A DNA stretch of 64,000 nucleotides, taken from NCBI RefSeq assembly GCF_023055435.1, contig NW_025964383.1:17236001-17300000 (forward strand), written 5' to 3'. Of this stretch, positions 27,705-64,000 are shown piece after piece. A program made the position numbers and the translations under genes. Position 1 is the stretch's first letter, and the number at the start of each line of letters is the position of its first letter. The stretch comes from Haliotis rufescens. Lineage: Eukaryota. The notes under the pieces are model-generated. The model was not told where the DNA came from. It saw only the letters and a program-made list of their open reading frames with translations, and did not search any database.

Positions 27705-27801
27705 GACTGCAAACGTGGTCTAGTGGTAGAGTGTCCGTCCAGAGAGCGGAAGGTCCGGGGTTCGATCCCCGTCCGCATCATACCAAAAGACGTTAAAAGA
27801 T
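27705..27801 (+). mobile_element. SINE family D head truncated by the start of the macrosatellite
   Basis: Follows family D to ...GACGTTAAAAGAT, then switches to array sequence instead of GGTACTTG. Confidence 0.8.
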
Positions 27802-28898
27802 AATCTGACCATTTTCCCAACCCGTCTTACATGATCGAAATACAGCACGTATGTTTTGAAGCATTTCAAATACTATTTTTTATGAATACCATCATCATGG
27901 TATAATTGAAGCAGCTCATTTGGCTTAAGTATCTGGATATTAACCATCTTAGAAGCTTTTGGGTGGACGTCGGGTACTTGAAAGGTTACTATATAAATAA
28001 ATAAATAGGCATGTACAATAAAGTTTATGTGTGTTAAATGATCTAGAGACATTATCTTCAGTGTATAACTGTCATGGTTTTGGGAGAATTACAAAGCACG
28101 GTGTCATGATTTATATCTTTGAATACAGAATGCTGTTAAAGCACATAATGGAAATTGGAGTATGTTGCTAGATAAACATAAGCACGTTGTTAGCATTGTT
28201 TTTGAAAGATGCCCACTGTTTCATGTCAGGATATTCTGATCTTTACTTTTTAGTGCCTTTCAGGGGTATAGTATTCATCAAGTGCTGACTCAAGTACAGA
28301 AATGTTATTTGGCCTGTGTTGATGTCAATGTTTCAATTTCCTTTTGTTTTCCATGCTGTGTACATTGACAATTTTTAACATGCATGACTCTCTCCTTAAG
28401 CACTTGGGCATGTACATTTCAAAAGGAAAGAGAAACAATTAAATGCTCTGATAATATGAAATACAACATGACATATATATCTCGCAGATCAATATCATAT
28501 GGGGTTGTGGTTCGTCTGTCTAAATCCTTTTGCTATAGGATCGGAATGGATACGGAAAACGAATTGCAACGTTCCAAACTGTATTTAATGTTATGGTGCA
28601 ACCATTACATTGGAATCTCTTCTTCTCCATCATACCTAATGTCCAAATGTGTTTCATTTCAATTGATCTTATATTCAATAGTCTGTATCTTTTTCCTATT
28701 TCAAAGAATAGATTAAGGACGATATCTGCGAATGATTGCCATACTCAGAACCAAGTAAAATGATCGAAGGCTTGGTATTGTGAGATACCATCTCAAATTA
28801 ACCTTTTCTCTCTCTCACAAACTTTCTATACGAATGATGTCTTCAAGATGTCGTGAGCGTGTCAGCAAATGATCAAGATTATAATATCGACTTCATTA

Positions 28899-28904
28899 TT
28901 TATT
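28899..28904 (-). terminator. Candidate polyadenylation signal AATAAA of the array gene (in every unit)
   Basis: About 150 nt downstream of the TAA stop on the minus strand. Confidence 0.5.
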
Positions 28905-29055
28905 TCCTCAGCATATTCATCAACAAACAAATGTGGTTTACAATATAATAGGATGCCCTTTGCACACTGTCAGGCAACATTTGTGTACAATAACAAAAAA
29001 TGAATAACAAGGTAAATGCAGCACTAGTTGATGTGGATGGGACTTGTGATTTCCC

Positions 29056-29677
29056 TTAGGCGTTTCTATGAAGTGCACTGTCGTCTACAGACAAAGCTCG
29101 ACTGAGAGTCGTCATATCGTAGCTGCTGTCGTTGCTGTATAGGTCTCCCTGGTCTTCGTCGTCCTCACTATATGAGCTGTCGGACAAGAGTCCCGTGAAG
29201 GAAGCTTCATCATCATTGAAAGAGGTATCTGCATTCCAGTCCGCCTCCGAATCACTCTCTGCAGAAGCATCTTTGGTGATGGCGTTTACACAGGCTTGCA
29301 CCTCTTGCCACTTGAGTTGTCTGTAGATGGTAAACATCTCCTTGACACCTTCCAGCACCCATCGTCTCTGGATCAGCTGTTCACCTCGGATTATGCAGTT
29401 GTTGGAGGAGTTGGCTGTCATCTTCCGCATCAGATGGTAGACTTGGGTATCTGAAAACAATAAAACGGGTAATTAGACATCTCGCTAAATGTGTTCACAA
29501 CAATGTCATTTTATTTTGTTCAATTCTAAAATTCAGTGTGATACCAATATTGCCATGTTTGCAGGGGACTGAAAAAGAGCACAGTTCATATTTACCTAAT
29601 GTCAGGATCTCTTTCACTGCATTGTCGTGGGCAATAAGGAGACGTCTCAGCTTGATGGCAACTTGAACTGGATCCAT
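29056..29677 (-). CDS. Array gene copy 1: 158-aa uncharacterised protein, exons 29677-29596 and 29450-29056
   Basis: aaaATGG Kozak context; donor TAG|gtaaat, branch-like CTAAT, acceptor ttttattgttttcag|; the phase-1 junction joins the 60-aa and 134-aa ORFs in frame (477 nt). Confidence 0.75.
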
Positions 29678-29794
29678 TTTCTAGGGCCTTCGGACACAAC
29701 ACTAGAATGCAGTCGGATGAAATACTACAGGAATTCAGTAGCGCCAAATTTGGATAATTGGAAAGTAGATGTGTTCGTTCTCACGGATTGAGAT

Positions 29795-30075
29795 GAAGTG
29801 AAGGACTCCAGTCCGTGCAAAACATTTATACTGACCCTTAGTATAAACATAGTAGTGGAGATTTATAGATCAAAGAGAGCATTTTCGAAGCCAGTGGCGA
29901 GATCAAAGCTACACTGCAACTTCATTAGGCTTTGATGCGAAAGGAATCTCACTGTCCACTTGAGAAACCAATCAACTTCTTGTCAAAACAAGTTTCCGTA
30001 TAAAGGGAGAGGTCTGAGAAGAGTTCAACCAATCTAGTCCTGTTATCTCCAGAGATTATAAATCATTGTTAATTG
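29795..30075 (-). promoter_or_regulatory. Predicted promoter of the array gene (repeated in every unit)
   Basis: TATAAAT at 29830-29824, 31 nt upstream of Inr-like TCA(+1, 29799)CTT; no upstream ATG in the 122-nt leader; TCF/LEF-type motifs at 29867, 29900 and 29930; CCAAT at 29968 and 30029. Confidence 0.55.
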
Positions 30076-31606
30076 ATTAAATCGGGATTGATCAAACGGC
30101 GCAGTACGTTGTGTTACTTAAAAATCCGATGTGGTTACTTTCGCATCCACAGAAACCAAGTCACAGAAACTTCTATCAGCTTGGAAATCGTGTGATGCTT
30201 CTCTGAACGTTTAGATTCAATTAAAAAACCCGAGAAAACCATGTCCACAATCCTAAGAAATCCTTACTCTGGTAGGCAAAGGCAAAGTGAATAAATGTAC
30301 AGTCAAATCTTGAACTTATTGTACACATCTGTTTGAGGTCGTAAATGCTATGATAATCTGACCATTTTCCCAACCCGTCTTACATGATCGAAATACAGCA
30401 CGTATGTTTTGAAGCATTTCAAATACTATTTTTTATGAATACCATCATCATGGTATAATTGAAGCAGCTCATTTGGCTTAAGTATCTGGATATTAACCAT
30501 CTTAGAAGCTTTTGGGTGGACGTCGGCTACTTAAAAGGTTACTATATAAATAAATAAATAGGCATGTACAATTAAGTTTATGTGTGTTAAATGATTTAGA
30601 GACATTATCTTCAGTGTATAACTGTCATGTTTTTGGGAGAATTACAAAGCACGGTGTCATGATTTATATCTTTGAATACAGAATGCTGTTAAAGCACATA
30701 ATGGAAATTGGAGTATGTTGCTAGATAAACATAAGCACGTTGTTAGCATTGTTTTTGAAAGATGCCCACTGTTTCATGTCAGGATATTCTGATCTTTACT
30801 TTTTAGTGCTTTCAGCGGAATAGTATTCATCAAGTGCTGACTTGGATCAGAAATGTTATTTGGCCTGTGTTGATGTCAATGTTTCAATTTCCTTTTGTTT
30901 TCCATGCTGTGTACATTGACAATTTTTAACATGCATGACTCTCTCCTTAAGCACTTGGGCATGTACATTTCAAAAGGAAAGAGAAACAATTAAATGCTCT
31001 GATAATATGAAATACAACATGACATATATATCTCGCAGATCAATATCATATGGGGTTGTGGTTCGTCTGTCTAAATCCTTTTGCTATAGGATCGGAATGG
31101 ATACGGAAAACGAATTGCAACGTTCCAAACTGTATTTAATGTTATGGTGCAACCATTACATTGGAATCTCTTCTTCTCCATCATACCTAATGTCCAAATG
31201 TGTTTCATTTCAATTGATCTTATATTCAATAGTCTGTATCTTTTTCCTATTTCAAAGAATAGATTAAGGACGATATCTGCGAATGATTGCCATACTCAGA
31301 ACCAAGTAAAATGATCGAAGGCTTGGTATTGTGAGATACCATCTCAAATTAACCTTTTCTCTCTCTCACAAACTTTCTATACGAATGATGTCTTCAAGAT
31401 GTCGTGAGCGTGTCAGCAAATGATCAAGATTATAATATCGACTTCATTATTTATTTCCTCAGCATATTCATCAACAAACAAATGTGGTTTACAATATAAT
31501 AGGATGCCCTTTGCACACTGTCAGGCAACATTTGTGTACAATAACAAAAAATGAATAACAAGGTAAATGCAGCACTAGTTGATGTGGATGGAACTTGTGA
31601 TTTCCC

Positions 31607-32228
31607 TTAGGCGTTTCTATGAAGTGCACTGTCGTCTACAGACAAAGCTCGACTGAGAGTCGTCATATCGTAGCTGCTGTCGTTGCTGTATAGGTCTCCC
31701 TGGTCTTCGTCGTCCACACTATATGAGCTGTCGGACAAGAGTTCCGTGAAGGAAGCTTCATCGTCATTGAAAGAGGTATCTGCATTCCAGTCCGCCTCCG
31801 AATCACTCTCTGCAGAAGCATCTTTGGTGATGGCGTTTACACAGGCTTGCACCTCTTGCCACTTGAGTTGTCTGTAGATGGTAAACATCTCCTTGACACC
31901 TTCCAGCACCCATCGTCTCTGGATCAGCTGTTCACCTCGGATTATGCAGTTGTTGGAGGAGTTGGCTGTCATCTTCCGCATCAGATGGTTGACTTGGGTA
32001 TCTGAAAACAATAAAACGGGTAATTAGAAATCTCGCTAAATGTGTTCACAACAATGTCATTTTATTTTGTTCAATTCTAAAATTCAGTGTGATACCAATA
32101 TTGCCATGTTTGCAGGGGACTGAAAAAGAGCACAGTTCATATTTACCTAATGTCAGGATCTCTTTCACTGCATTGTCGTGGGCAATAAGGAGACGTCTCA
32201 GCTTGATGGCAACTTGAACTGGATCCAT
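31607..32228 (-). CDS. Array gene copy 2 (exons 32228-32147, 32001-31607)
   Basis: As copy 1; Y>N and E>V variants; proximal TATA mutated. Confidence 0.72.
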
Positions 32229-34157
32229 TTTCTAGGGCCTTCGGACACAACACTAGAATGCAGTCGGATGAAATACTACAGGAATTCAGTAGCGCCAAAT
32301 TTGGATAATTGGAAAGTAGATGTGTTCGTTTTCACGGATTGAGATGAAGTGAAGGACTCCAGTCCGTGCAAAACATTCATACTGACCCTTAGTATAAACA
32401 TAGTAGTGAAGATTTATAGATCAAAGAGAGCATTTTCGAAGCCAGTGGCGAGATCAAAGCTACACTGCAACTTCATTAGGCTTTGATCCGAAAGGAATCT
32501 CACTGTCCACTTGAGAAACCAATCAACTTCTTGTCAAAACAAGTTTCCGTATAAAGGGAGAGGTCTGAGAAGAGTTCAACCAATCTAGTCCTGTTATCTC
32601 CAGAGATTATCAATCATTGTTAATTGATTAAATCGGGATTGATCAAACGGCGCAGTACGTTGTGTTACTTAAAAATCCGATGTGGTTACTTTCGCATCCA
32701 CAGAAACCAAGTCACAGAAACTTCTATCAGCTTGGAAATCGTGTGATGCTTCTCTGAACGTTTAGTTTCAATTAAAAAACCCGAGAAAACCATGTCCACA
32801 ATCCTAAGAAATCCTTACTCTGGTAGGCAAAGGCAAAGTGAATAAATGTACAGTCAAATCTTGAACTTATTGTACACATCTGTTTGAGGTCGTAAATGCT
32901 ATGATAATCTGACCATTTTCCCAACCCGTCTTACATGATCGAAATACAGCACGTATGTTTTGAAGCATTTCAAATACTATTTTTTATGAATACCATCATC
33001 ATGGTATAATTGAAGCAGCTCATTTGGCTTAAGTATCTGGATATTAACCATCTTAGAAGCTTTTGGATGGACGTCGGCTACTTAAAAGGTTACTATATAA
33101 ATAAATAAATAGGCATGTACAATTAAGTTTATGTGTGTTAAATGATCTAGAGACATCATCTTCAGTGTATAACTGTCATGTTTTTGGGAGAATTACAAAG
33201 CACGGTGTCATGATTTATATCTTTGAATACAGAATGCTGTTAAAGCACATAATGGAAATTGGAGTATGTTGCTAGATAAACATAAGCACGTTGTTAGCAT
33301 TGTTTTTGAAAGATGCCCACTGTTTCATGTCAGGATATTCTGATCTTTACTTTTTAGTGCTTTCAGCGGAATAGTATTCATCAAGTGCTGACTTGGATCA
33401 GAAATGTTATTTGGCCTGTGTTGATGTCAATGTTTCAATTTCCTTTTGTTTTCCATGCTGTCTACATTGACAATTTTTAACATGCATGACTCTCTCCTTA
33501 AGCACTTGGGCATGTACATTTCAAAAGGAAAGAGAAACAATTAAATGCTCTGATAATATGAAATACAACCTGACATATATATCTCGCAGATCAATATCAT
33601 ATGGGGTTGTGGTTCGTCTGTCTAAATCCTTTTGCTATAGGATCGGAATGGATACGGAAAACGAATTGCAACGTTCCAAACTGTATTTAATGTTATGGTG
33701 CAACCATTACATTGGAATCTCTTCTTCTCCATCATACCTAATGTCCAAATGTGTTTCATTTCAATTGATCTTATATTCAATAGTCTGTATCTTTTTCCTA
33801 TTTCAAAGAATAGATTAAGGACGATATCTGCGAATGATTGCCATACTCAGAACCAAGTAAAATGATCGAAGGCTTGGTATTGTGAGATACCATCTCAAAT
33901 TAACCTTTTCTCTCTCTCACAAACTTTCTATACGAATGATGTCTTCAAGATGTCGTGAGCGTGTCAGCAAATGATCAAGATTATAATATCGACTTCATTA
34001 TTTATTTCCTCAGCATATTCATCAACAAACAAATGTGGTTTACAATATAATAGGATGCCCTTTGCACACTGTCAGGCAACATTTGTGTACAATAACAAAA
34101 AATGAATAACAAGGTAAATGCAGCACTAGTTGATGTGGATGGGACTTGTGATTTCCC

Positions 34158-34779
34158 TTAGGCGTTTCTATGAAGTGCACTGTCGTCTACAGACAAAGCT
34201 CGACTGAGAGTCGTCATATCGTAGCTGCTGTCGTTGCTGTATAGGTCTCCCTGGTCTTCGTCGTCCTCACTATATGAGCTGTCGGACAAGAGTTCCGTGA
34301 AGGAAGCTTCATCATCATTGAAAGAGGTATCTGCATTCCAGTCCGCCTCCGAATCACTCTCTGCAGAAGCATCTTTGGTGATGGCGTTTACACAGGCTTG
34401 CACCTCTTGCCACTTGAGTTGCCTGTAGATGGTAAACATCTCCTTGACACCTTCCAGCACCCATCGTCTCTGGATCAGCTGTTCACCTCGGATTATGCAG
34501 TTGTTGGAGGAGTTGGCTGTCATCTTCCGCATCAGATGGTAGACTTGGGTATCTGAAAACAATAAAACGGGTAATTAGAAATCTCGCTAAATGTGTTCAC
34601 AACAATGTCATTTTATTTTGTTCAATTCTAAAATTCAGTGTGATACCAATATTGCCATGTTTGCAGGGGACTGAAAAAGAGCACAGTTCATATTTACCTA
34701 ATGTCAGGATCTCTTTCACTGCATTGTCGTGGGCAATAAGGAGACGTCTCAGCTTGATGGCAACTTGAACTGGATCCAT
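34158..34779 (-). CDS. Array gene copy 3 (exons 34779-34698, 34552-34158)
   Basis: As copy 1. Confidence 0.75.
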
Positions 34780-36709: not shown

Positions 36710-37331
36710 TTAGGCGTTTCTATGAAGTGCACTGTCGTCTACAGACAAAGCTCGACTGAGAGTCGTCATATCGTAGCTGCTGTCGTTGCTGTATAGGTCT
36801 CCCTGGTCTTCGTCGTCCTCACTATATGAGCTGTCGGACAAGAGTTCCGCGAAGGAAGCTTCATCGTCATTGAAAGAGGTATCTGCATTCCAGTCCGCCT
36901 CCGAATCACTCTCTGCAGAAGCATCTTTGGTGATGGCGTTTACACAGGCTTGCACCTCTTGCCACTTGAGTTGTCTGTAGATGGTAAACATCTCCTTGAC
37001 ACCTTCCAGCACCCATCGTCTCTGGATCAGCTGTTCACCTCGGATTATGCAGTTGTTGGAGGAGTTGGCTGTCATCTTCCGCATCAGATGGTAGACTTGG
37101 GTATCTGAAAACAATAAAACGGGTAATTAGAAATCTCGCTAAATGTGTTCACAACAATGTCATTTTATTTTGTTCAATTCTAAAATTCAGTGTGATACCA
37201 ATATTGCCATGTTTGCAGGGGACTGAAAAAGAGCACAGTTCATATTTACCTAATGTCAGGATCTCTTTCACTGCATTGTCGTGGGCAATAAGGAGACGTC
37301 TCAGCTTGATGGCAACTTGAACTGGATCCAT
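36710..37331 (-). CDS. Array gene copy 4 (exons 37331-37250, 37104-36710)
   Basis: As copy 1; T>A variant; proximal TATA mutated. Confidence 0.72.
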
Positions 37332-39260: not shown

Positions 39261-39882
39261 TTAGGCGTTTCTATGAAGTGCACTGTCGTCTACAGACAAA
39301 GCTCGACTGAGAGTCGTCATATCGTAGCTGCTGTCGTTGCTGTATAGGTCTCCCTGGTCTTCGTCGTCCTCACTATATGAGCTGTCGGACAAGAGTTCCG
39401 TGAAGGAAGCTTCATCATCATTGAAAGAGGTATCTGCATTCCAGTCCGCCTCCGAATCACTCTCTGCAGAAGCATCTTTGGTGATGGCGTTTACACAGGC
39501 TTGCACCTCTTGCCACTTGAGTTGTCTGTAGATGGTAAACATCTCCTTGACACCTTCCAGCACCCATCGTCTCTGGATCAGCTGTTCACCTCGGATTATG
39601 CAGTTGTTGGAGGAGTTGGCTGTCATCTTCCGCATCAGATGGTAGACTTGGGTATCTGAAAACAATAAAACGGGTAATTAGAAATCTCGCTAAATGTGTT
39701 CACAACAATGTCATTTTATTTTGTTCAATTCTAAAATTCAGTGTGATACCAATATTGCCATGTTTGCAGGGGACTGAAAAAGAGCACAGTTCATATTTAC
39801 CTAATGTCAGGATCTCTTTCACTGCATTGTCGTGGGCAATAAGGAGACGTCTCAGCTTGATGGCAACTTGAACTGGATCCAT
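39261..39882 (-). CDS. Array gene copy 5 (exons 39882-39801, 39655-39261)
   Basis: As copy 1. Confidence 0.75.
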
Positions 39883-41810: not shown

Positions 41811-42432
41811 TTAGGCGTTTCTATGAAGTGCACTGTCGTCTACAGACAAAGCTCGACTGAGAGTCGTCATATCGTAGCTGCTGTCGTTGCTGTATAGGTC
41901 TCCCTGGTCTTCGTCGTCCTCACTATATGAGCTGTCGGACAAGAGTTCCGTGAAGGAAGCTTCATCATCATTGAAAGAGGTATCTGCATTCCAGTCCGCC
42001 TCCGAATCACTCTCTGCAGAAGCATCTTTGGTGATGGCGTTTACACAGGCTTGCACCTCTTGCCACTTGAGTTGTCTGTAGATGGTAAACATCTCCTTGA
42101 CACCTTCCAGCACCCATCGTCTCTGGATCAGCTGTTCACCTCGGATTATGCAGTTGTTGGAGGAGTTGGCTGTCATCTTCCGCATCAGATGGTAGACTTG
42201 GGTATCTGAAAACAATAAAACGGGTAATTAGAAATCTCGCTAAATGTGTTCACAACAATGTCATTTTATTTTGTTCAATTCTAAAATTCAGTGTGATACC
42301 AATATTGCCATGTTTGCAGGGGACTGAAAAAGAGCACAGTTCATATTTACCTAATGTCAGGATCTCTTTCACTGCATTGTCGTGGGCAATAAGGAGACGT
42401 CTCAGCTTGATGGCAACTTGAACTGGATCCAT
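41811..42432 (-). CDS. Array gene copy 6 (exons 42432-42351, 42205-41811)
   Basis: As copy 1. Confidence 0.75.
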
Positions 42433-44301
42433 TTTCTAGGGCCTTCGGACACAACACTAGAATGCAGTCGGATGAAATACTACAGGAATTCAGTAGCGCC
42501 AAATTTGGATAATTGGAAAGTAGATGTGTTCGTTTTCACGGATTGAGATGAAGTGAAGGACTCCAGTCCGTGCAAAACATTTATACTGACCCTTAGTATA
42601 AACATAGTAGTGGAGATTTATAGATCAAAGAGAGCATTTTCGAAGCCAGTGGCGAGATCAAAGCTACACTGCAACTTCATTAGGCTTTGATCCGAAAGGA
42701 ATCTCACTGTCCACTTGAGAAACCAATCAACTTCTTGTCAAAACAAGTTTCCGTATAAAGGGAGAGGTCTGAGAAGAGTTCAACCAATCTAGTCCTGTTA
42801 TCTCCAGGGATTATCAATCATTGTTAATTGATTAAATCGGGATTGATCAAACGGCGCAGTACGTTGTGATACTTAAAAATCCGATGTGGTTACTTTCGCA
42901 TCCACAGAAACCAAGTCACAGAAACTTCTATCAGCTTGGAAATCGTGTGATGCTTCTCTGAACGTTTAGTTTCAATTAAAAAACCCGAGAAAACCATGTC
43001 CACAATCCTAAGAAATCCTTACTCTGGTAGGCAAAGGCAAAGTGAATAAATGTACAGTCAAATCTTGAACTTATTGTACACATCTGTTTGAGGTCGTAAA
43101 TGCTATGATAATCGACCATTTTCCCAACCCGTCTTACATGATCGAAATACAGCACGTATGTTTTGAAGCATTTCAAATACTATTTTTTATGAATACCATC
43201 ATCATGGTATAATTGAAGCAGCTCATTTGGCTTAAGTATCTGGATATTAACCATCTTAGAAGCTTTTGGATGGACGTCGGCTACTTAAAAGGTTACTATA
43301 TAAATAAATAAATAGGCATGTACAATAAAGTTTATGTGTGTTAAATGATCTAGAGACATCATCTTCAGTGTATAACTGTCATGTTTTTGGGAGAATTACA
43401 AAGCACGGTGTCATGATTTATATCTTTGAATACAGAATGCTGTTAAAGCACATGATGGAAATTGGAGTATGTTGCTAGATAAACATAAGCACGTTGTTAG
43501 CATTGTTTTTGAAAGATGCCCACTGTTTCATGTCAGGATATTCTGATCTTTACTTTTTAGTGCCTTTCAGGGGAATAGTATTCATCAAGTGCTGACTTGG
43601 ATCAGAAATGTTATTTGGCCTGTGTTGATGTCAATGTTTCAATTTCCTTTTGTTTTCCATGCTGTCTACATTGACAATTTTTAACATGCATGACTCTCTC
43701 CTTAAGCACTTGGGCATGTACATTTCAAAAGGAAAGAGAAACAATTAAATGCTCTGATAATATGAAATACAACATGACATATATATCTCGCAGATCAATA
43801 TCATATGGGGTTGTGGTTCGTCTGTCTAAATCCTTTTGCTATAGGATCGGAATGGATACGGAAAACGAATTGCAACGTTCCAAACTGTATTTAATGTTAT
43901 GGTGCAACCATTACATTGGAATCTCTTCTTCTCCATCATACCTAATGTCCAAATGTGTTTCATTTCAATTGATCTTATATTCAATAGTCTGTATCTTTTT
44001 CCTGTTTCAAAGAATAGATTAAGGACGATATCTGCGAATGATTGCCATACTCAGAACCAAGTAAAATGATCGAAGGCGAATGATGTCTTCAAGATGTCGT
44101 GAGCGTGTCAGCAAATGATCAAGATTATAATATCGACTTCATTATTTATTTCCTCAGCATATTCATCAACAAACAAATGTGGTTTACAATATAATAGGAT
44201 GCCCTTTGCACACTGTCAGGCAACATTTGTGTACAATAACAAAAAATGAATAACAAGGTAAATGCAGCACTAGTTGATGTGGATGGGACTTGTGATTTCC
44301 C

Positions 44302-44923
44302 TTAGGCGTTTCTATGAAGTGCACTGTCGTCTACAGACAAAGCTCGACTGAGAGTCGTCATATCGTAGCTGCTGTCGTTGCTGTATAGGTCTCCCTGGTC
44401 TTCGTCGTCCTCACTATATGAGCTGTCGGACAAGAGTTCCGTGAAGGAAGCTTCATCGTCATTGAAAGAGGTATCTGCATTCCAGTCCGCCTCCGAATCA
44501 CTCTCTGCAGAAGCATCTTTGGTGATGGCGTTTACACAGGCTTGCACCTCTTGCCACTTGAGTTGTCTGTAGATGGTAAACATCTCCTTGACACCTTCCA
44601 GCACCCATCGTCTCTGGATCAGCTGTTCACCTCGGATTATGCAGTTGTTGGAGGAGTTGGCTGTCATCTTCCGCATCAGATGGTAGACTTGGGTATCTGA
44701 AAACAATAAAACGGGTAATTAGAAATCTCGCTAAATGTGTTCACAACAATGTCATTTTATTTTGTTCAATTCTAAAATTCAGTGTGATACCAATATTGCC
44801 ATGTTTGCAGGGGACTGAAAAAGAGCACAGTTCATATTTACCTAATGTCAGGATCTCTTTCACTGCATTGTCGTGGGCAATAAGGAGACGTCTCAGCTTG
44901 ATGGCAACTTGAACTGGATCCAT
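44302..44923 (-). CDS. Array gene copy 7 (exons 44923-44842, 44696-44302); separated from its promoter by the LINE
   Basis: ORF intact; LINE at 45057-47176. Confidence 0.68.
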
Positions 44924-45056
44924 TTTCTAGGGCCTTCGGACACAACACTAGAATGCAGTCGGATGAAATACTACAGGAATTCAGTAGCGCCAAATTTGGA
45001 TAATTGGAAAGTAGATGTGTTCGTTTTCACGGATTGAGATGAAGTGAAGGACTCCA

Positions 45057-47176
45057 CTTACTTACTTACTTACTTTGGAGATTTAACGTGCGCTTTCCGA
45101 CTGATGCGTATTTCGCACACGGGCCCGGCCAGGCCATTTAATGTGTTTCCGAAAGGGGCGAAGGTGGTCTGTGCAACCCAAGAGGGGGGTTTTAGGGGTT
45201 GCTTATATAGAATTTGGGAATTTTGAGATTTGGAATAGATGCCGATGGGATTGGGGAGGAGAACTAAGGGAGCTGGGTATGGTGGATGTTTGTTTGTTTA
45301 TGTGATTTTGATTTGGTGAGTTATTGTGTTTTTAGATGCGTTTTATTAGTTCCGTTTTGATTAAGAATACGCCTAAGGCCTTGAAGTTTTCTAGTTTATT
45401 TTGTGGGTTTAGTATTGCTTCTAGAGTTAGAGCCTTGTTTAGATTGAGGGTGGTTTGTAATGCGGTTCGATGTGTTAGGTAGTGTGTGCAGTGGATGAGT
45501 GCGTGTTCTGGGGTTTCTGGTTGTTTGCAGTGCGGGCAGTTACCTGTAGTGTGTTTTTTAAATTTTTTTAGGTGGTTATTTAGGTTGGTGTGTCCTGTTT
45601 GGAGTTTAGTGATTACTCTGTCGATTTTTTTGGATGGATGGAGAATTTTTGGTTTGGTTAGTGGTTTGCTGAGCACTTTTTTGATTTGGCTATTTGAGTT
45701 TAGATATAGGTTATGCCATTTTTTGGTGATTTTTTGCTTGTTTACACTTTTAATTTCTGATTTTGAGATGGGTAAGTTTAAGCTTATTTCTGGGATTTTG
45801 AGGGATAGTTTAGCTGCTTTATCGGCGTTTTCATTACCGTATATTCCTACGTGGGCGGGTATCCACAAGAAGGTTATTTGTTTGCCTGCCTTAGTTAGGT
45901 CGTTGGAGCTTTTAAGTATTTGATTTATTAATTTAGGTCGGTTTTTGGTATTTTTGTTTTGGAGGGCTTGCAGTCCACTTAGGGAGTCGGTAAGTATTAG
46001 GATTTTTTTGTGGTTTTTGGATTCTTGATTATGGAGGGCTGAGGCCATGCCCATTAGTTCTGCCGTGAATATTGATTGGTTGTTTGGGAGTCGGAAGGAT
46101 TGTGTGGTTTTAGTTGGTTGTGGGGTATGGACTCCGAAACCTGTGTGTTTGGAGGTCGGATCTGAGGATCCGTCCGTGTAAATGTGACACCAATTTGGCC
46201 AATTTTCGTGTATGTATGCTAGTGTGGTAGTTTTAGCTATGTTTGGGTCGGTTTGTTTATTTATTTGGCTAGCTAGTGTTGTGTCTATTTTGGGTATTTT
46301 AAGTTTAGGGGTGAAGATATTTGATTGTTTGCAGTTTTGTTTAAGATTTTTAATTTGGTGTTCATTTAGGTAGTTTGTTATTCTTTGGGATATTGGGGTA
46401 AGTAAGGGGTGTTTACGAGCTAGAGCTTGGTTTTTGGGGCTGATGTTTTGGTTTATTAAGTTTTGGATGAGAGGGTTTGATTGGGACGCGGCCCAGAAAT
46501 TTAAGCTTAGCTGTTCCCTGCGTAGACTTAGTGGCATTTCTCCTGTTAAGGACTGAAGTGAGGTGTAGGAGGTGCCATGTTGGGTGCGTGTAATTAGTTT
46601 GAGAGCCTGATATTGTATTGAGTCAAGTTTTTTAGATAGAGGTGTTTAGGGTGTTGTGTATGGCGCAGCCGTAGTCTAGTTTTGATCTAATTAGTGATAT
46701 GTAGAGAGAGAGGAGGGTATCTTTGGATGCTCCCCAGTTAGAACCAGTTAGGCATCTTAGGGTGTTTAGGTCTTTACTGCATTTAGTTGTTAGGTTAGGT
46801 GAGATGTTCATCGAAAATAAGTCCTAAGAATTTGGTTTGTTTTTGAAATTTGATTGTTTGATTGTTTAGCTGGAGGATTGGGGAGGCGGGTTTCATGTTT
46901 TTATGTTTGAATACTATTCCTGTTGTTTTTTCTGAGTTAAGGGAGAAGCCCCATTTGTCAGCCCACTGTTGTATTTTATTAAGAGATTTTTGGAGTAAAT
47001 TTTGGACCATGTTCATGCTTTTAGTGCGGATCCAGATGGCTCCATCATCCGCGAATTTTGATGTGTTTACTTTAGGGGATAGGCCCTCGAATAGATCGTT
47101 TATCATTATATTGAAGAGGGTGGGGCTGAGGATACTGCCCTGTGGAGTACCATTTTCTAGGGGACATTGGTCCCGA
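45057..47176 (-). mobile_element. 5'-truncated non-LTR retrotransposon (I-group LINE: RT C-terminus, RNase H, CCHC)
   Basis: GTPQGSILSPTLF, KFADD, KFLGL, WGA..LL.LY..LIRSKLDYG; (TAAG)n 3' tail; perfect 12-bp TSD TGAAGGACTCCA at 45045-45056 and 47177-47188. Confidence 0.95.
45332..47160 (-). pseudogene. LINE ORF2 remnant; RNase H + zinc-knuckle part open at 45332-46537, frameshifts near 46795 and 46640
   Basis: IYTDGS, FTAELMG, ILTDSLS, WIPAHVGIYGNENADKAAK, CPHC...H...C. Confidence 0.9.
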
Positions 47177-48958: not shown

Positions 48959-49580
48959 TTAGGCGTTTCTATGAAGTGCACTGTCGTCTACAGACAAAGC
49001 TCGACTGAGAGTCGTCATATCGTAGCTGCTGTCGTTGCTGTATAGGTCTCCCTGGTCTTCGTCGTCCTCACTATATGAGCTGTCGGACAAGAGTTCCGTG
49101 AAGGAAGCTTCATCATCATTGAAAGAGGTATCTGCATTCCAGTCCGCCTCCGAATCACTCTCTGCAGAAGCATCTTTGGTGATGGCGTTTACACAGGCTT
49201 GCACCTCTTGCCACTTGAGTTGTCTGTAGATGGTAAACATCTCCTTGACACCTTCCAGCACCCATCGTCTCTGGATCAGCTGTTCACCTCGGATTATGCA
49301 GTTGTTGGAGGAGTTGGCTGTCATCTTCCGCATCAGATGGTAGACTTGGGTATCTGAAAACAATAAAACGGGTAATTAGAAATCTCGCTAAATGTGTTCA
49401 CAACAATGTCATTTTATTTTGTTCAATTCTAAAATTCAGTGTGATACCAATATTGCCATGTTTGCAGGGGACTGAAAAAGAGCACAGTTCATATTTACCT
49501 AATGTCAGGATCTCTTTCACTGCATTGTCGTGGGCAATAAGGAGACGTCTCAGCTTGATGGCAACTTGAACTGGATCCAT
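48959..49580 (-). CDS. Array gene copy 8 (exons 49580-49499, 49353-48959)
   Basis: As copy 1. Confidence 0.75.
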
Positions 49581-51483: not shown

Positions 51484-52105
51484 TTAGGCGTTTCTATGAA
51501 GTGCACTGTCGTCTACAGACAAAGCTCGACTGAGAGTCGTCATATCGTAGCTGCTGTCGTTGCTGTATAGGTCTCCCTGGTCTTCGTCGTCCTCACTATA
51601 TGAGCTGTCGGACAAGAGTTCCGTGAAGGAAGCTTCATCATCATTGAAAGAGGTATCTGCATTCCAGTCCGCCTCCGAATCACTCTCTGCAGAAGCATCT
51701 TTGGTGATGGCGTTTACACAGGCTTGCACCTCTTGCCACTTGAGTTGTCTGTAGATGGTAAACATCTCCTTGACACCTTCCAGCACCCATCGTCTCTGGA
51801 TCAGCTGTTCACCTCGGATTATGCAGTTGTTGGAGGAGTTGGCTGTCATCTTCCGCATCAGATGGTAGACTTGGGTATCTGAAAACAATAAAACGGGTAA
51901 TTAGAAATCTCGCTAAATGTGTTCACAACAATGTCATTTTATTTTGTTCAATTCTAAAATTCAGTGTGATACCAATATTGCCATGTTTGCAGGGGACTGA
52001 AAAAGAGCACAGTTCATATTTACCTAATGTCAGGATCTCTTTCACTGCATTGTCGTGGGCAATAAGGAGACGTCTCAGCTTGATGGCAACTTGAACTGGA
52101 TCCAT
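51484..52105 (-). CDS. Array gene copy 9 (exons 52105-52024, 51878-51484)
   Basis: As copy 1. Confidence 0.75.
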
Positions 52106-54019: not shown

Positions 54020-54641
54020 TTAGGCGTTTCTATGAAGTGCACTGTCGTCTACAGACAAAGCTCGACTGAGAGTCGTCATATCGTAGCTGCTGTCGTTGCT
54101 GTATAGGTCTCCCTGGTCTTCGTCGTCCTCACTATATGAGCTGTCGGACAAGAGTTCCGTGAAGGAAGCTTCATCGTCATTGAAAGAGGTATCTGCATTC
54201 CAGTCCGCCTCCGAATCACTCTCTGCAGAAGCATCTTTGGTGATGGCGTTTACACAGGCTTGCACCTCTTGCCACTTGAGTTGTCTGTAGATGGTAAACA
54301 TCTCCTTGACACCTTCCAGCACCCATCGTCTCTGGATCAGCTGTTCACCTCGGATTATGCAGTTGTTGGAGGAGTTGGCTGTCATCTTCCGCATCAGATG
54401 GTAGACTTGGGTATCTGAAAACAATAAAACGGGTAATTAGAAATCTCGCTAAATGTGTTCACAACAATGTCATTTTATTTTGTTCAATTCTAAAATTCAG
54501 TGTGATACCAATATTGCCATGTTTGCAGGGGACTGAAAAAGAGCACAGTTCATATTTACCTAATGTCAGGATCTCTTTCACTGCATTGTCGTGGGCAATA
54601 AGGAGACGTCTCAGCTTGATGGCAACTTGAACTGGATCCAT
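54020..54641 (-). CDS. Array gene copy 10 (exons 54641-54560, 54414-54020)
   Basis: As copy 1. Confidence 0.75.
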
Positions 54642-56571: not shown

Positions 56572-57193
56572 TTAGGCGTTTCTATGAAGTGCACTGTCGT
56601 CTACAGACAAAGCTCGACTGAGAGTCGTCATATCGTAGCTGCTGTCGTTGCTGTATAGGTCTCCCTGGTCTTCGTCGTCCTCACTATATGAGCTGTCGGA
56701 CAAGAGTTCCGTGAAGGAAGCTTCATCATCGTTGAAAGAGGTATCTGCATTCCAGTCCGCCTCCGAATCACTCTCTGCAGAAGCATCTTTGGTGATGGCG
56801 TTTACACAGGCTTGCACCTCTTGCCACTTGAGTTGTCTGTAGATGGTAAACATCTCCTTGACACCTTCCAGCACCCATCGTCTCTGGATCAGCTGTTCAC
56901 CTCGGATTATGCAGTTGTTGGAGGAGTTGGCTGTCATCTTCCGCATCAGATGGTAGACTTGGGTATCTGAAAACAATAAAACGGGTAATTAGAAATCTCG
57001 CTAAATGTGTTCACAACAATGTCATTTTATTTTGTTCAATTCTAAAATTCAGTGTGATACCAATATTGCCATGTTTGCAGGGGACTGAAAAAGAGCACAG
57101 TTCATATTTACCTAATGTCAGGATCTCTTTCACTGCATTGTCGTGGGCAATAAGGAGACGTCTCAGCTTGATGGCAACTTGAACTGGATCCAT
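56572..57193 (-). CDS. Array gene copy 11 (exons 57193-57112, 56966-56572)
   Basis: As copy 1. Confidence 0.75.
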
Positions 57194-59107
57194 TTTCTAG
57201 GGCCTTCGGACACAACACTAGAATGCAGTCGGATGAAATACTACAGGAATTCAGTAGCGCCAAATTTGGATAATTGGAAAGTAGATGTGTTCGTTCTCAC
57301 GGATTGAGATGAAGTGAAGGACTCCAGTCCGCGCAAAACATTTATACTGACCCTTAGTATAAACATAGTAGTGGAGATTTATAGATCAAAGAGAGCATTT
57401 TCGAAGCCAGTGGCGAGATCAAAGCTACACTGCAACTTCATTAGGCTTTGATCCGAAAGGAATCTCACTGTCCACTTGAGAAACCAATCAACTTCTTGTC
57501 AAAACAAGTTTCCGTATAAAGGGAGAGGTCTGAGAAGAGTTCAACCAATCTAGTCCTGTTATCTCCAGGGATTATCAATCATTGTTAATTGATTAAATCG
57601 GGATTGATCAAACGGCGCAGTACGTTGTGATACTTAAAAATCCGATGTGGTTACTTTCGCATCCACAGAAACCAAGTCACAGAAACTTCTATCAGCTTGG
57701 AAATCGTGTGATGCTTCTCTGAACGTTTAGTTTCAATTAAAAAACCCGAGAAAACCATGTCCACAATCCTAAGAAATCCTTACTCTGGTAGGCAAAGGCA
57801 AAGTGAATAAATGTACAGTCAAATCTTGAACTTATTGTACACATCTGTTTGAGGTCGTAAATGCTATGATAATCGACCATTTTCCCAACCCGTCTTACAT
57901 GATCGAAATACAGCACGTATGTTTTGAAGCATTTCAAATACTATTTTTTATGAATACCATCATCATGGTATAATTAAAGCAGCTCATACAATAAGTATCT
58001 GGATATTAACCATCTTAGAAGCTTTTGGATGGACGTCGGCTACTTAAAAGGTTACTATATAAATAAATAAATAGGCATGTACAATAAAGTTTATGTGTGT
58101 TAAATGATCTAGAGACATCATCTTCAGTGTATAACTGTCATGTTTTTGGGAGAATTACAAAGCACGGTGTCATGATTTATATCTTTGAATACAGAATGCT
58201 GTTAAAGCACATGATGGAAATTGGAGTATGTTGCTAGATAAACATAAGCACGTTGTTAGCATTGTTTTTGAAAGATGCCCACTGTTTCATGTCAGGATAT
58301 TCTGATCTTTACTTTTTAGTGCCTTTCAGGGGAATAGTATTCATCAAGTGCTGACTTGGATCAGAAATGTTATTTGGCCTGTGTTTCAATTTCCTTTTGT
58401 TTTCCATGCTGTGTACATTGACAATTTTTAACATGCATGACTCTCTCCTTAAGCACTTGGGCATGTACATTTCAAAAGGAAAGAGAAACAATTAAATGCT
58501 CTGATAATATGAAATACAACATGACATATATATCTCGCAGATCAATATCATATGGGGTTGTGGTTCGTCTGTCTAAATCCTTTTGCTATAGGATCGGAAT
58601 GGATACGGAAACCGAATTGCAACGTTCCAAACTGTATTTAATGTTATGGTGCAACCATTACATTGGAATCTCTTCCTTACATCATACCTAATGTCCAAAT
58701 GTGTTTCATTTCAATTGATCTTATATTCAATAGTCTGTATCTTTTTCCTATTTCAAAGAATAGATTAAGGACGATATCTGCAAATGATTGCCATACTCAG
58801 AACCAAGTAAAATGATCGAAGGCTTGGTATTGTGAGATACCATCTCAAATTAACCTTTTCTCTCTCTCACAAACTTTCTATACGAATGATGTCTTCAAGA
58901 TGTCGTGAGCGTGTCAGCAAATGATCAAGATTATAATATCGACTTCATTATTTATTTCCTCAGCATATTCATCAACAAACAAATGTGGTTTACAATATAA
59001 TAGGATGCCCTTTGCACACTGTCAGGCAACATTTGTGTACAATAACAAAAAATGAATAACAAGGTAAATGCAGCACTAGTTGATGTGGATGGGTCTTGTG
59101 ATTTCCC

Positions 59108-59729
59108 TTAGGCGTTTCTATGAAGTGCACTGTCGTCTACAGACAAAGCTCGACTGAGAGTCGTCATATCGTAGCTGCTGTCGTTGCTGTATAGGTCTCC
59201 CTGGTCTTCGTCGTCCTCACTATATGAGCTGTCGGACAAGAGTTCCGTGAAGGAAGCTTCATCGTCATTGAAAGAGGTATCTGCATTCCAGTCCGCCTCC
59301 GAATCACTCTCTGCAGAAGCATCTTTGGTGATGGCGTTTACACAGGCTTGCACCTCTTGCCACTTGAGTTGTCTGTAGATGGTAAACATCTCCTTGACAC
59401 CTTCCAGCACCCATCGTCTCTGGATCAGCTGTTCACCTCGGATTATGCAGTTGTTGGAGGAGTTGGCTGTCATCTTCCGCATCAGATGGTAGACTTGGGT
59501 ATCTGAAAACAATAAAACGGGTAATTAGAAATCTCGCTAAATGTGTTCACAACAATGTCATTTTATTTTGTTCAATTCTAAAATTCAGTGTGATACCAAT
59601 ATTGCCATGTTTGCAGGGGACTGAAAAAGAGCACAGTTCATATTTACCTAATGTCAGGATCTCTTTCACTGCATTGTCGTGGGCAATAAGGAGACGTCTC
59701 AGCTTGATGGCAACTTGAACTGGATCCAT
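59108..59729 (-). CDS. Array gene copy 12 (exons 59729-59648, 59502-59108)
   Basis: As copy 1. Confidence 0.75.
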
Positions 59730-61659
59730 TTTCTAGGGCCTTCGGACACAACACTAGAATGCAGTCGGATGAAATACTACAGGAATTCAGTAGCGCAAAA
59801 TTTGGATAATTGGAAAGTAGATGTGTTCGTTCTCACGGATTGAGATGAAGTGAAGGACTCCAGTCCGCGCAAAACATTTATACTGACCCTTAGTATAAAC
59901 ATAGTAGTGGAGATTTATAGATCAAAGAGAGCATTTTCGAAGCCAGTGGCGAGATCAAAGCTACACTGCAACTTCATTAGGCTTTGATCCGAAAGGAATC
60001 TCACTGTCCACTTGAGAAACCAATCAACTTCTTGTCAAAACAAGTTTCCGTATAAAGGGAGAGGTCTGAGAAGAGTTCAACCAATCTAGTCCTGTTATCT
60101 CCAGGGATTATCAATCATTGTTAATTGATTAAATCGGGATTGATCAAACGGCGCAGTACGTTGTGATACTTAAAAATCCGATGTGGTTACTTTCGCATCC
60201 ACAGAAACCAAGTCACAGAAACTTCTATCAGCTTGGAAATCGTGTGATGCTTCTCTGAACGTTTAGTTTCAATTAAAAAACCCGAGAAAACCATGTCCAC
60301 AATCCTAAGAAATCCTTACTCTGGTAGGCAAAGGCAAAGTGAATAAATGTACAGTCAAATCTTGAACTTATTGTACACATCTGTTTGAGGTCGTAAATGC
60401 TATGATAATCTGACCATTTTCCCAACCCGTCTTACATGATCGAAATACAGCACGTATGTTTTGAAGCATTTCAAATACTATTTTTTATGAATACCATCAT
60501 CATGGTATAATTGAAGCAGCTCATTTGGCTTAAGTATCTGGATATTAACCATCTTAGAAGCTTTTGGATGGACATCGGCTACTTAAAAGGTTACTATATA
60601 AATAAATAAATAGGCATGTACAATAAAGTTTATGTGTGTTAAATGATCTAGAGACATCATCTTCAGTGTATAACTGTCATGTTTTTGGGAGAATTACAAA
60701 GCACGGTGTCATGATTTATATCTTTGAATACAGAATGCTGTTAAAGCACATAATGGAAATTGGAGTATGTTGCTAGATAAACATAAGCACGTTGTTAGCA
60801 TTGTTTTTGAAAGATGCCCACTGTTTCATGTCAGGATATTCTGATCTTTACTTTTTAGTGCCTTTCAGGGGAATAGTATTCATCAAGTGCTGACTTGGAT
60901 CAGAAATGTTATTTGGCCTGTGTTGATGTCAATGTTTCAATTTCCTTTTGTTTTCCATGCTGTCTACATTGACAATTTTTAACATGCATGACTCTCTCCT
61001 TAAGCACTTGGGCATGTACATTTCAAAAGGAAAGAGAAACAATTAAATGCTCTGATAATATGAAATACAACATGACATATATATCTCGCAGATCAATATC
61101 ATATGGGGTTGTGGTTCGTCTGTCTAAATCCTTTTGCTATAGGATCGGCATGGATACGGAAAACGAATTGCAACGTTCCAAACTGTATTTAATGTTATGG
61201 TGCAACCATTACATTGGAATCTCTTCTTCTCCATCATACCTAATGTCCAAATGTGTTTCATTTCAATTGATCTTATATTCAATAGTCTGTATCTTTTTCC
61301 TATTTCAAAGAATAGATTAAGGACGATATCTGCGAATGCTTGCCATACTCAGAACCTAGTAAAATGATCGAAGGCTTGGTATTGTGAGATACCATCTCAA
61401 ATTAACCTTTTCTCTCTCTCACAAACTTTCTATACGAATGATGTCTTCAAGATGTCGTGAGCGTGTCAGCAAATGATCAATATTATAATATCGACTTCAT
61501 TATTTATTTCCTCAGCATATTCATCAACAAACAAATGTGGTTTACAATATAATAGGATGCCCTTTGCACACTGTCAGGCAACATTTGTGTACAATAACAA
61601 AAAATGAATAACAAGGTAAATGCAGCACTAGTTGATGTGGATGGGACTTGTGATTTCCC

Positions 61660-62281
61660 TTAGGCGTTTCTATGAAGTGCACTGTCGTCTACAGACAAAG
61701 CTCGACTGAGAGTCGTCATATCGTAGCTGCTGTCGTTGCTGTATAGGTCTCCCTGGTCTTCGTCGTCCTCACTATATGAGCTGTCGGACAAGAGTTCCGT
61801 GAAGGAAGCTTCATCATCGTTGAAAGAGGTATCTGCATTCCAGTCCGCCTCCGAATCACTCTCTGCAGAAGCATCTTTGGTGATGGCGTTTACACAGGCT
61901 TGCACCTCTTGCCACTTGAGTTGTCTGTAGATGGTAAACATCTCCTTGACACCTTCCAGCACCCATCGTCTCTGGATCAGCTGTTCACCTCGGATTATGC
62001 AGTTGTTGGAGGAGTTGGCTGTCATCTTCCGCATCAGATGGTAGACTTGGGTATCTGAAAACAATAAAACGGGTAATTAGAAATCTCGCTAAATGTGTTC
62101 ACAACAATGTCATTTTATTTTGTTCAATTCTAAAATTCAGTGTGATACCAATATTGCCATGTTTGCAGGGGACTGAAAAAGAGCACAGTTCATATTTACC
62201 TAATGTCAGGATCTCTTTCACTGCATTGTCGTGGGCAATAAGGAGACGTCTCAGCTTGATGGCAACTTGAACTGGATCCAT
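61660..62281 (-). CDS. Array gene copy 13 (exons 62281-62200, 62054-61660)
   Basis: As copy 1. Confidence 0.75.
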
Positions 62282-64000
62282 TTTCTAGGGCCTTCGGACA
62301 CAACACTAGAATGCAGTCGGATGAAATACTACAGGAATTCAGTAGCGCCAAATTTGGATAATTGGAAAGTAGATGTGTTCGTTCTCACGGATTGAGATGA
62401 AGTGAAGGACTCCAGTCCGCGCAAAACATTTATACTGACCCTTAGTATAAACATAGTAGTGGAGATTTATAGATCAAAGAGAGCATTTTCGAAGCCAGTG
62501 GCGAGATCAAAGCTACACTGCAACTTCATTAGGCTTTGATCCGAAAGGAATCTCACTGTCCACTTGAGAAACCAATCAACTTCTTGTCAAAACAAGTTTC
62601 CGTATAAAGGGAGAGGTCTGAGAAGAGTTCAACCAATCTAGTCCTGTTATCTCCAGGGATTATCAATCATTGTTAATTGATTAAATCGGGATTGATCAAA
62701 CGGCGCAGTACGTTGTGATACTTAAAAATCCGATGTGGTTACTTTCGCATCCACAGAAACCAAGTCACAGAAACTTCTATCAGCTTGGAAATCGTGTGAT
62801 GCTTCTCTGAACGTTTAGTTTAATTAAAAAACCCGAGAAAACCATGTCCACAATCCTAAGAAATCCTTACTCTGGTAGGCAAAGGCAAAGTGAATAAATG
62901 TACAGTCAAATCTTGAACTTATTGTACACATCTGTTTGAGGTCGTGAATGCTATGATAATCTGACCATTTTCCCAACCCGTCTTACATGATCGAAATACA
63001 GCACGTATGTTTTGAAGCATTTCAAATACTATTTTTTATGAATACCATCATCATGGTATAATTGAAGCAGCTCATTTGGCTTAAGTATCTGGATATTAAC
63101 CATCTTAGAAGCTTTTGGATGGACGTCGGCTACTTAAAAGGTTACTATATAAATAAATAAATAGGCATGTACAATAAAGTTTATGTGTGTTAAATGATCT
63201 AGAGACATCATCTTCAGTGTATAACTGTCATGTTTTTGGGAGAATTACAAAGCACGGTGTCATGATTTATATCTTTGAATACAGAATGCTGTTAAAGCAC
63301 ATAATGGAAATTGGAGTATGTTGCTAGATAAACATAAGCACGTTGTTAGCATTGTTTTTGAAAGATGCCCACTGTTTCATGTCAGGATATTCTGATCTTT
63401 ACTTTTTAGTGCCTTTCAGGGGAATAGTATTCATCAAGTGCTGACTTGGATCAGAAATGTTATTTGGCCTGTGTTGATGTCAATGTTTCAATTTCCTTTT
63501 GTTTTCCATGCTGTCTACATTGACAATTTTTAACATGCATGACTCTCTCCTTAAGCACTTGGGCATGTACATTTCAAAAGGAAAGAGAAACAATTAAATG
63601 CTCTGATAATATGAAATACAACATGACATATATATCTCGCAGATCAATATCATATGGGGTTGTGGTTCGTCTGTCTAAATCCTTTTGCTATAGGATCGGC
63701 ATGGATACGGAAAACGAATTGCAACGTTCCAAACTGTATTTAATGTTATGGTGCAACCATTACATTGGAATCTCTTCTTCTCCATCATACCTAATGTCCA
63801 AATGTGTTTCATTTCAATTGATCTTATATTCAATAGTCTGTATCTTTTTCCTATTTCAAAGAATAGATTAAGGACGATATCTGCGAATGCTTGCCATACT
63901 CAGAACCTAGTAAAATGATCGAAGGCTTGGTATTGTGAGATACCATCTCAAATTAACCTTTTCTCTCTCTCACAAACTTTCTATACGAATGATGTCTTCA

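Follow-up and report, generated by a model that had tools for sequence, protein, structure and literature searches.

From position 27799 to its end, the window analysed here (64,000 nucleotides of the red abalone, Haliotis rufescens; C605:17236001-17300000) consists of near-identical repeat units of about 2551 bp, each with a gene for a 158-amino-acid (aa) protein. We consider it very likely that this is a functional, selectively maintained tandem gene array, an amplified member of an uncharacterised family, and not a satellite with a chance open reading frame (ORF). When the genome (1.33 Gb, 615 contigs) was searched and the next 80 kb beyond the window were read to find the end of the array, the head-to-tail units were found to continue to window-equivalent position 133779 (C605:17369779). 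The whole array spans 106 kb and comprises 38.1 units (identity 97-99 %) with 37 gene copies, all at one locus.

A 106-kb array of intact gene copies

When unit 1 (27799-30351) was compared with the window using BLAST, contiguous head-to-tail copies with 98.0-99.1 % identity to it were observed from 27799 to 64000. This bears out the claim of an earlier note on this DNA (the original prediction) that a gene-bearing macrosatellite of 2.55-kb units lies here. The units exceed 1 kb, are highly identical and lie head-to-tail, as in other macrosatellites, and one complete, intact gene per unit was found in 37 of 37 copies. The window contains no undetermined base (N count 0), and within it the array is continuous except for a 2.1-kb insertion (45057-47176) and the loss of 60 bp near 44077. 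Over the whole array the only interruptions are small deletions and three insertions of 2.1, 3.4 and 5.9 kb, which share unit position 2012. The most diverged units are the last three (97.1-97.7 %). The units are AT-rich, with a GC content of 0.36-0.41.

The features of the array within the window are as follows; the basis of each is given in brackets.

27799-64000, no strand assigned: array, first 14.2 of 38 units (BLAST, unit about 2551 bp)
27799-30351, minus strand: reference repeat unit 1, in the order spacer, gene, promoter (BLAST and sequence reading)
28899-28904, minus strand: AATAAA poly(A) signal, about 150 nt past the stop codon (sequence only)
29056-29450, minus strand: copy 1, exon 2 coding part, AT plus 130 codons plus stop (sequence)
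29451-29595, minus strand: copy 1, phase-1 intron of 145 bp, GTAAAT...TTTTCAG, with CTAAT about 20 nt before the AG (sequence)
29596-29677, minus strand: copy 1, exon 1 coding part, ATG at 29677, 27 codons plus the first base (G) of the split Asp codon (sequence)
29825-29867, minus strand: two TATAAA boxes, at 29867-29862 and 29830-29825, 190 and 153 nt 5' of the ATG (sequence)
29869-29936, no strand assigned: three perfect TCF/LEF-type heptamers (CTTTGAT or ATCAAAG), at 29869-29875, 29902-29908 and 29930-29936 (motif scan)
31607-32228, minus strand: gene copy 2, ATG to stop, intact (sequence)
34158-34779, minus strand: gene copy 3, intact, product equal to RefSeq P0001 (exon-wise translation)
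36710-37331, minus strand: gene copy 4, intact, product equal to RefSeq P0002 (exon-wise translation)
39261-39882, minus strand: gene copy 5, intact (exon-wise translation)
41811-42432, minus strand: gene copy 6, intact (exon-wise translation)
44302-44923, minus strand: gene copy 7, coding part intact, its TATA/TCF promoter module split from the gene by a long interspersed nuclear element (LINE) (sequence)
45057-47176, minus strand: 5'-truncated LINE with reverse-transcriptase end, RNase H ORF, (AAGT)n tail and an 11-bp duplication, GAAGGACTCCA, at its flanks (sequence)
48959-49580, minus strand: gene copy 8, intact (exon-wise translation)
51484-52105, minus strand: gene copy 9, intact (exon-wise translation)
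54020-54641, minus strand: gene copy 10, intact (exon-wise translation)
56572-57193, minus strand: gene copy 11, intact (exon-wise translation)
59108-59729, minus strand: gene copy 12, intact (exon-wise translation)
61660-62281, minus strand: gene copy 13, intact (exon-wise translation)

In each of the window's 13 complete copies, exon 1 has 82 nt, the GT..AG intron has 145 nt, the GAT codon is split and exon 2 is open over 130 codons. The prediction that these copies keep the ORF and both splice sites is thus correct, and it extends to the whole array, in which 37 of 37 copies are intact (82-nt exon 1, GT..AG phase-1 intron and open exon 2). From exon 2 come the last part of helix 1 and all that follows it in the product: helix 2, the acidic linker and the C-terminal helix. 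For comparison with the databases the exons were searched separately, and the database protein P0001 was used for full-length analyses. P0001 equals the translation of exon 1, split Asp codon and exon 2 in 21 of the 37 copies, nine further copies correspond to seven other RefSeq records (P0002, P0003, P0006, P0008, P0010, P0012 and P0014), and the remaining seven match none of the RefSeq records compared. This exon-wise identity, with the same intron in paralogues (see below), supports the predicted joining of ORFs of 60 and 134 aa across a 145-bp phase-1 intron.

The other predicted parts of the transcription unit could also be read in the sequence: the stretch from the proximal TATA box to the start codon is free of ATG, the start codon has a Kozak-type context (gaaaATGG), and the AATAAA lies downstream. 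The TATA box was rightly placed upstream of the gene, but there are two boxes and not one.

An internal control was provided by a 110-aa ORF on the strand opposite to the gene (28384-28716, plus strand), which recurs in the units. It is truncated in 6 of 36 units, whereas the gene is truncated in 0 of 37. We also considered this plus-strand ORF as a second gene and rejected it because it is broken in those six units. The only coding indel in the array is an in-frame 9-bp deletion; the indels in the intron are of 1 and 4 bp. Two common coding variants (in 11-12 of 37 copies) are synonymous, and none of the 12 non-synonymous variants occurs in more than four copies.

The coding sequence of the array has 37 genomic occurrences, all at the array locus, and the sole other trace is a 130-bp fragment on another contig. 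No copy of the 1.1-kb spacer (27799-28880) outside the array was found in the genome search, and Rfam and tRNA scans of the repeat unit gave no Rfam family and no tRNA. Because these scans were empty, the array is not built around an RNA gene, and since both coding sequence and spacer are confined to a single locus, the unit is neither a dispersed element nor an RNA-gene repeat.

The isolated fragment derives from exon 2 (C445:695109-695238; L009:5109-5238), is 88 % identical to it and is not flanked by any other part of the unit; it is probably a dead remnant.

The three insertions are LINE copies that entered at the same unit nucleotide (2012): besides the 2.1-kb copy at 45057-47176, they occupy window-equivalent positions 98115-101557 (3.4 kb) and 104121-110035 (5.9 kb) in the L004-L005 region. 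This nucleotide is some 15 nt past the proximal TATA box, and in 3 of 37 gene copies a LINE in the orientation of the gene parts the TATA/TCF module from the gene body. These LINE copies are secondary, later insertions with target-site duplications at one unit position. A transposon- or virus-derived accessory gene inside a repeated mobile unit would account for the high copy number, the lack of a known domain and the presence of a LINE in the array. However, the spacer is unique to the array locus, the unit has no terminal repeats and no reverse transcriptase or transposase of its own, the LINE copies came later, and at six other loci the family members are ordinary genes of two exons in which the intron is conserved. 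We find such an origin scarcely plausible; the single-locus spacer and the late arrival of the LINEs also speak against a known transposon or viral fragment, which the original prediction had named as the finding that would overturn it.

Abalone homologues and the conserved intron

The same 158-aa product is annotated as 'uncharacterized protein' in RefSeq for H. rufescens (at least 12 accessions), H. cracherodii (at least 13), H. rubra (at least 9) and H. asinina (at least 19). The gene is therefore not hidden in the unit, as had been supposed, since NCBI already annotates its product. The orthologues of the four species are equal in length and share 87-99 % identity (87 % in the most distant pair). 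An exhaustive HMMER scan also found relatives at 35-50 % identity. Their common core is GEQL.QRRC.LEG.KEM..YR..KWQ.VQ.C.N.IT, followed by an acidic stretch and then by a C-terminal TRALC.DSCELHR plus two residues; Tyr70, Lys74, Trp75, Ile85 and Arg156 are invariant or nearly so in the family. In several of the distant relatives the family resemblance ends exactly at the junction codon, and the residues before it look like a translated pyrimidine tract.

The red abalone genome itself contains two diverged long-type paralogues and about 15 of a short form. A long form lies on C179, single copies lie on C583 and C223, and the short forms are clustered on C113 (nine copies within 30 kb and one elsewhere on the contig) and C13 (three copies). 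When the exon 2 sequences of the intron-bearing paralogues were examined (L010-L018), 14 of 14 were preceded by a pyrimidine tract and an AG/AT acceptor (CAG in 13, TAG in one; the slash marks the splice site). The paralogues on C179 and C583 also have homologues of the 27-aa exon 1, which are 44-48 % identical and end in G/GT. The codon and phase of the intron are common to the array gene and every intron-bearing paralogue, and the RefSeq models of the short forms use the same junction. Homologues with a conserved frame and intron, whose absence was to have counted against the gene, thus exist, and the intron keeps its codon and phase even in diverged paralogues.

When divergence was computed on exon 2 of ten short-form paralogues, as a check against diverged homologues, non-synonymous divergence (dN) was 0.046 and synonymous divergence (dS) was 0.131, a ratio of 0.35. 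These results bear on the reading of the array as a non-coding satellite, whose ORF and splice-like sites would be chance features copied 37 times. Copy identity alone cannot show selection and so would be compatible with such a satellite, but protein homologues in other species and at greater distance conserve frame, length and intron position, and the ratio of 0.35 was obtained in the paralogues. We give this reading practically no credence. The RefSeq models in four Haliotis species, the paralogue intron and the 35-50 % relatives agree instead with the proposal of an amplified, uncharacterised, spliced protein-coding gene.

The suggested likeness to multicopy mollusc proteins also fits, as all homologues named to species are multicopy Haliotis proteins. 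In the literature we found no described member of the family and no relevant paper on these genes. The family is undescribed and possibly lineage-restricted, its species-named members coming only from abalones. The gene models were already public; what is new here is that the family is recognised as such, together with its conserved intron, the array of 37 copies over 106 kb with its selection control, and a cluster of TCF sites shared with a paralogue (see below).

Several members of the family deserve a separate description. The short-form clusters (L011-L014, C113:16.894-16.924 Mb; L015-L016, C13:41.527-41.539 Mb) are irregularly spaced, at 2-8 kb, and consist of two-exon genes for 151-153 aa which RefSeq calls 'uncharacterized'. 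The C179 paralogue (L010:4488-5772, minus strand; C179:1910488-1911772) is long and single-copy and keeps all four family cysteines, and its acidic linker is interrupted by about 120 inserted residues, among them four His/Gln/Gly-rich repeats (HQHHGGDHLLQ-like). One short-form paralogue, at C113:15.456 Mb, is intronless, and its frame runs straight through the predicted junction (L019:4357-4977, minus strand; C113:15456357-15456977). In this gene CAG replaces the usual ATG, and the frame extends upstream to another Met. A 200-aa protein from another data set, P0057, is 98 % identical to it. No poly(A) remnant is visible in its sequence, so a retrocopy origin is unproven. Finally, the distant relative P0062 (198 aa) contains the family sequence one and a half times in one open frame, which suggests a tandem duplication or a repeat-collapsed contig in its species too.

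Predicted product and promoter motifs

When the array protein was modelled with AlphaFold2 from the family alignment, helices were predicted at residues 3-40 and 50-90 (predicted local distance difference test, pLDDT, 75-87), disorder at 92-139 and a further helix at 140-157. In the short form, the hairpin formed by the first two helices reached a pLDDT of 90-98. The head of the protein is thus modelled as an alpha-helical hairpin of about 90 residues, which is basic (isoelectric point 9.4, net charge +3.7). It is followed by a linker of about 50 residues rich in Ser, Asp and Glu (18 Asp/Glu, no Lys or Arg, net charge about -18, six aromatic residues) and by a conserved C-terminal helix that ends in the invariant Arg. 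The protein has eight CK2-type sites, most of them inside the linker, and no signal peptide or membrane segment was found in the 158-aa product. The helical N-terminal region and acidic tail with aromatic residues that had been read from the ORF are therefore supported by model and composition, and the C-terminal helix is an addition to them. The activation-domain- or chaperone-like character that the original prediction proposed for the tail, like burst expression of the gene, stays conjecture. Linker length varies from about 15 to about 190 residues across the family while the hairpin and the C-terminal helix are kept, so we infer that these two parts carry the function. They would be the binding parts, with the acidic linker acting as a tunable charged spacer between them.

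Searches for a known domain or fold gave no assignment. In Pfam-A nothing scored above cutoff for the exon translations, the RefSeq proteins or 25 family members; the best match was KCT2 on the acidic tail (18.7 bits against a cutoff of 26.2), and the other sub-threshold matches were to low-complexity or coiled-coil families. A sequence profile search of the PDB gave nothing significant (best E-value 0.57), and the ESM Atlas gave no usable match. When two AlphaFold2 models were compared with the PDB using Foldseek and in a wide search with VIA-align, only generic long alpha-hairpins were obtained (prefoldin, ESCRT-III, ING, TBCA). A hairpin homodimer predicted from two copies of residues 1-92 scored 0.01, which speaks neither for nor against binding.

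We also considered two other readings of the conserved residues. A zinc-binding or disulfide role of the cysteines was rejected because only one of the four remains in the array protein of H. rufescens and because the short forms have Gln or Asn in place of His. The C-terminal motif was also read as BH3, MIM or APC/C tail; these readings were rejected because its spacing misfits those consensus motifs.

The promoter contains the three heptamers listed above (CTTTGAT/ATCAAAG), which we take to be the TCF/LEF HMG-box consensus. They are the only three in the whole unit, lie within 68 bp at -259, -231 and -198 from the ATG and abut the distal TATA box. Of the 37 copies, 34 keep all three heptamers and an undisturbed promoter. 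Although no alignment is possible between this promoter and that of the C583 paralogue, the latter has three perfect heptamers within 90 bp, at -290, -237 and -201, almost as far from the ATG as in the array. In the C179 paralogue one site is perfect and two are relaxed. Five of seven heptamer instances extend to CTTTGATCT. As background, 148 kb of non-array DNA contained 34 heptamers (2.3e-4 per bp), and the only cluster of three within 100 bp was the one in the C583 paralogue promoter; the Poisson chance of such a cluster is about 2e-6 per 100-bp window. Judged by its motifs, the shared cluster is a phylogenetic footprint: as at TCF targets, several sites stand beside the core promoter, and they are kept where the surrounding DNA has diverged.

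Two further tandem repeats were observed in the window before the array begins. A 95-bp unit is repeated in nine tandem copies with 97 % identity at 9072-9937. At 20179-21011 there is a G-rich microsatellite derived from (AGTG)n, with a higher-order period of 326 bp and a GC skew of 0.45. Long ORFs on the minus strand of this region were rejected as repeat artefacts.

Homogenisation, function and known systems

Several points weigh against reading the array as a maintained set of genes under TCF control. The ratio of non-synonymous to synonymous polymorphism within the array (pN/pS) is no lower than 0.62 on 17 sites. The intron and 3' untranslated region (UTR) are as invariant across the copies as the coding sequence, so that homogenisation and not selection explains much of the copy identity. 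The RefSeq gene models are automatic predictions. In the array protein, helix 140-157 is modelled at low confidence, and the fold-search matches (Z of 11.5 or lower) fall below the informative level for helical models. The promoters of the short-form paralogues have no TCF motifs, and the case for TCF is one of motifs only; sites like these are also bound by other HMG-box factors.

Homogenisation is also seen when species are compared. Copies of one species differ from each other by 1.8-3.4 residues, those of different species groups by 12-21, and the copies group by species; inside each Haliotis species they evolve in concert. If the amplification were neutral, the gene would be real and its 37-copy state would have no dosage function, a recent segmental amplification having been homogenised by unequal crossing-over or gene conversion with one or a few copies working. 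The 97-99 % identity of the units, the invariance of intron and UTR, the pN/pS of 0.62 and the tolerance of a LINE between promoter and gene in three copies are what such a history would leave. However, the four species, which differ by 12-21 residues, each have many annotated copies, and the multi-copy state is therefore old or recurrent. In addition, 37 of 37 ORFs are intact whereas the control ORF is broken in 6 of 36 units, and all promoter motifs are kept in 34 of 37 copies. On balance we regard neutral amplification as unlikely.

An ampliconic gene driven by genetic conflict, that is, a germline selfish or suppressor gene from an arms race such as mouse Slx/Sly or Drosophila Stellate, would also show high copy number, taxon restriction and concerted evolution, and the family does have several independent clusters. 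It is a very unlikely explanation here, as the core of the protein is almost invariant between species: the two species groups have 11 fixed differences in 158 residues, evenly spread, and they give no hint of rapid diversification. Neither an opposing array nor an antisense partner was seen in the unit, and nothing links the locus to sex or meiotic drive.

In a functional, selectively maintained gene array, the high copy number would serve bulk production. Each of the 34 promoter-intact copies would be driven by a TATA box preceded by three TCF/LEF sites, and Wnt/beta-catenin-responsive expression would be expected. We infer such expression because the array promoter has three TCF/LEF motifs and the same cluster occurs in a paralogue promoter that cannot be aligned to it, and on this motif evidence TCF/beta-catenin control is the best hypothesis at present of what switches the array on. 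A bolder version, speculative and taken as a whole unlikely, is that the gene may be a lineage-restricted Wnt/beta-catenin target fired in bulk from 34 TATA/3xTCF promoters, maybe at zygotic genome activation or in the beta-catenin-dependent fate decisions of spiralians. The product could then be a new regulator of the pathway, e.g. an ICAT-like feedback inhibitor or a chromatin- or histone-binding factor.

Through the array, an uncharacterised family acquires a name and an anatomy; one of its members stands at about 37 near-identical copies. It also yields a concrete and cheap hypothesis, beta-catenin/TCF-driven bulk expression of a small hairpin-plus-acidic-tail protein. Should the gene be a Wnt target of the early embryo, it would offer a rare way into zygotic gene activation and into the fate choices that depend on beta-catenin in spiralians, and a further case of gene amplification for burst expression. 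A highly expressed stage marker would have practical use, as abalones are both farmed and conserved. If it is merely another amplified orphan gene, it would still be a useful example of concerted evolution with an internal selection control.

The product was compared with two known proteins. ICAT (CTNNBIP1) is a small intracellular beta-catenin inhibitor of the Wnt pathway with a helical N-terminal domain followed by an acidic tail. The abalone protein likewise has a small helical head and an acidic tail, which by analogy only would fit a TCF-driven feedback gene; however, it has no Pfam ICAT match, its head is a two-helix hairpin and not a three-helix bundle, and its conserved C-terminal helix has no counterpart in ICAT. 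With ESCRT-III proteins (Snf7/CHMP) it shares a basic long alpha-hairpin, an acidic C-terminal part and a short conserved end helix, and the CHMP4B and Snf7 hairpins were among the structural matches, at a Z of about 10, which is the range given by any long hairpin. Unlike ESCRT-III, none of 25 family members matches Pfam Snf7 at E-values up to 10, helices 3-5 are absent, and the C-terminal motif misfits the MIM consensus. Both likenesses are architectural only, and both fail the sequence test.

By type, the array belongs with the gene-bearing macrosatellites or tandem gene arrays, of which D4Z4/DUX4 and the early-zygotic arrays amplified in vertebrates are examples. The parallel with D4Z4/DUX4 that the original prediction had drawn holds for the architecture, namely kb-scale head-to-tail units with one short complete gene each, high identity and species-wise homogenisation. 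It does not hold for the product, which by Pfam has no homeobox match and thus no homeodomain or known DNA-binding domain of the DUX4 type. The abalone coding region also differs in being spliced, the units are AT-rich and not GC-rich, and a TATA box and a poly(A) signal of its own are present in each promoter-intact unit. Lacking a homeodomain or any known domain, the product stands outside the DUX4 and early-zygotic gene families. With Xenopus nodal5/6, zebrafish miR-430 and the histone repeats the array shares a short TATA-box transcription unit repeated in tens of copies, although its product is an orphan intracellular protein and not a ligand, a histone or an RNA. The Xenopus nodal arrays are beta-catenin/TCF targets, and this control is matched by the three TCF motifs of the abalone array.

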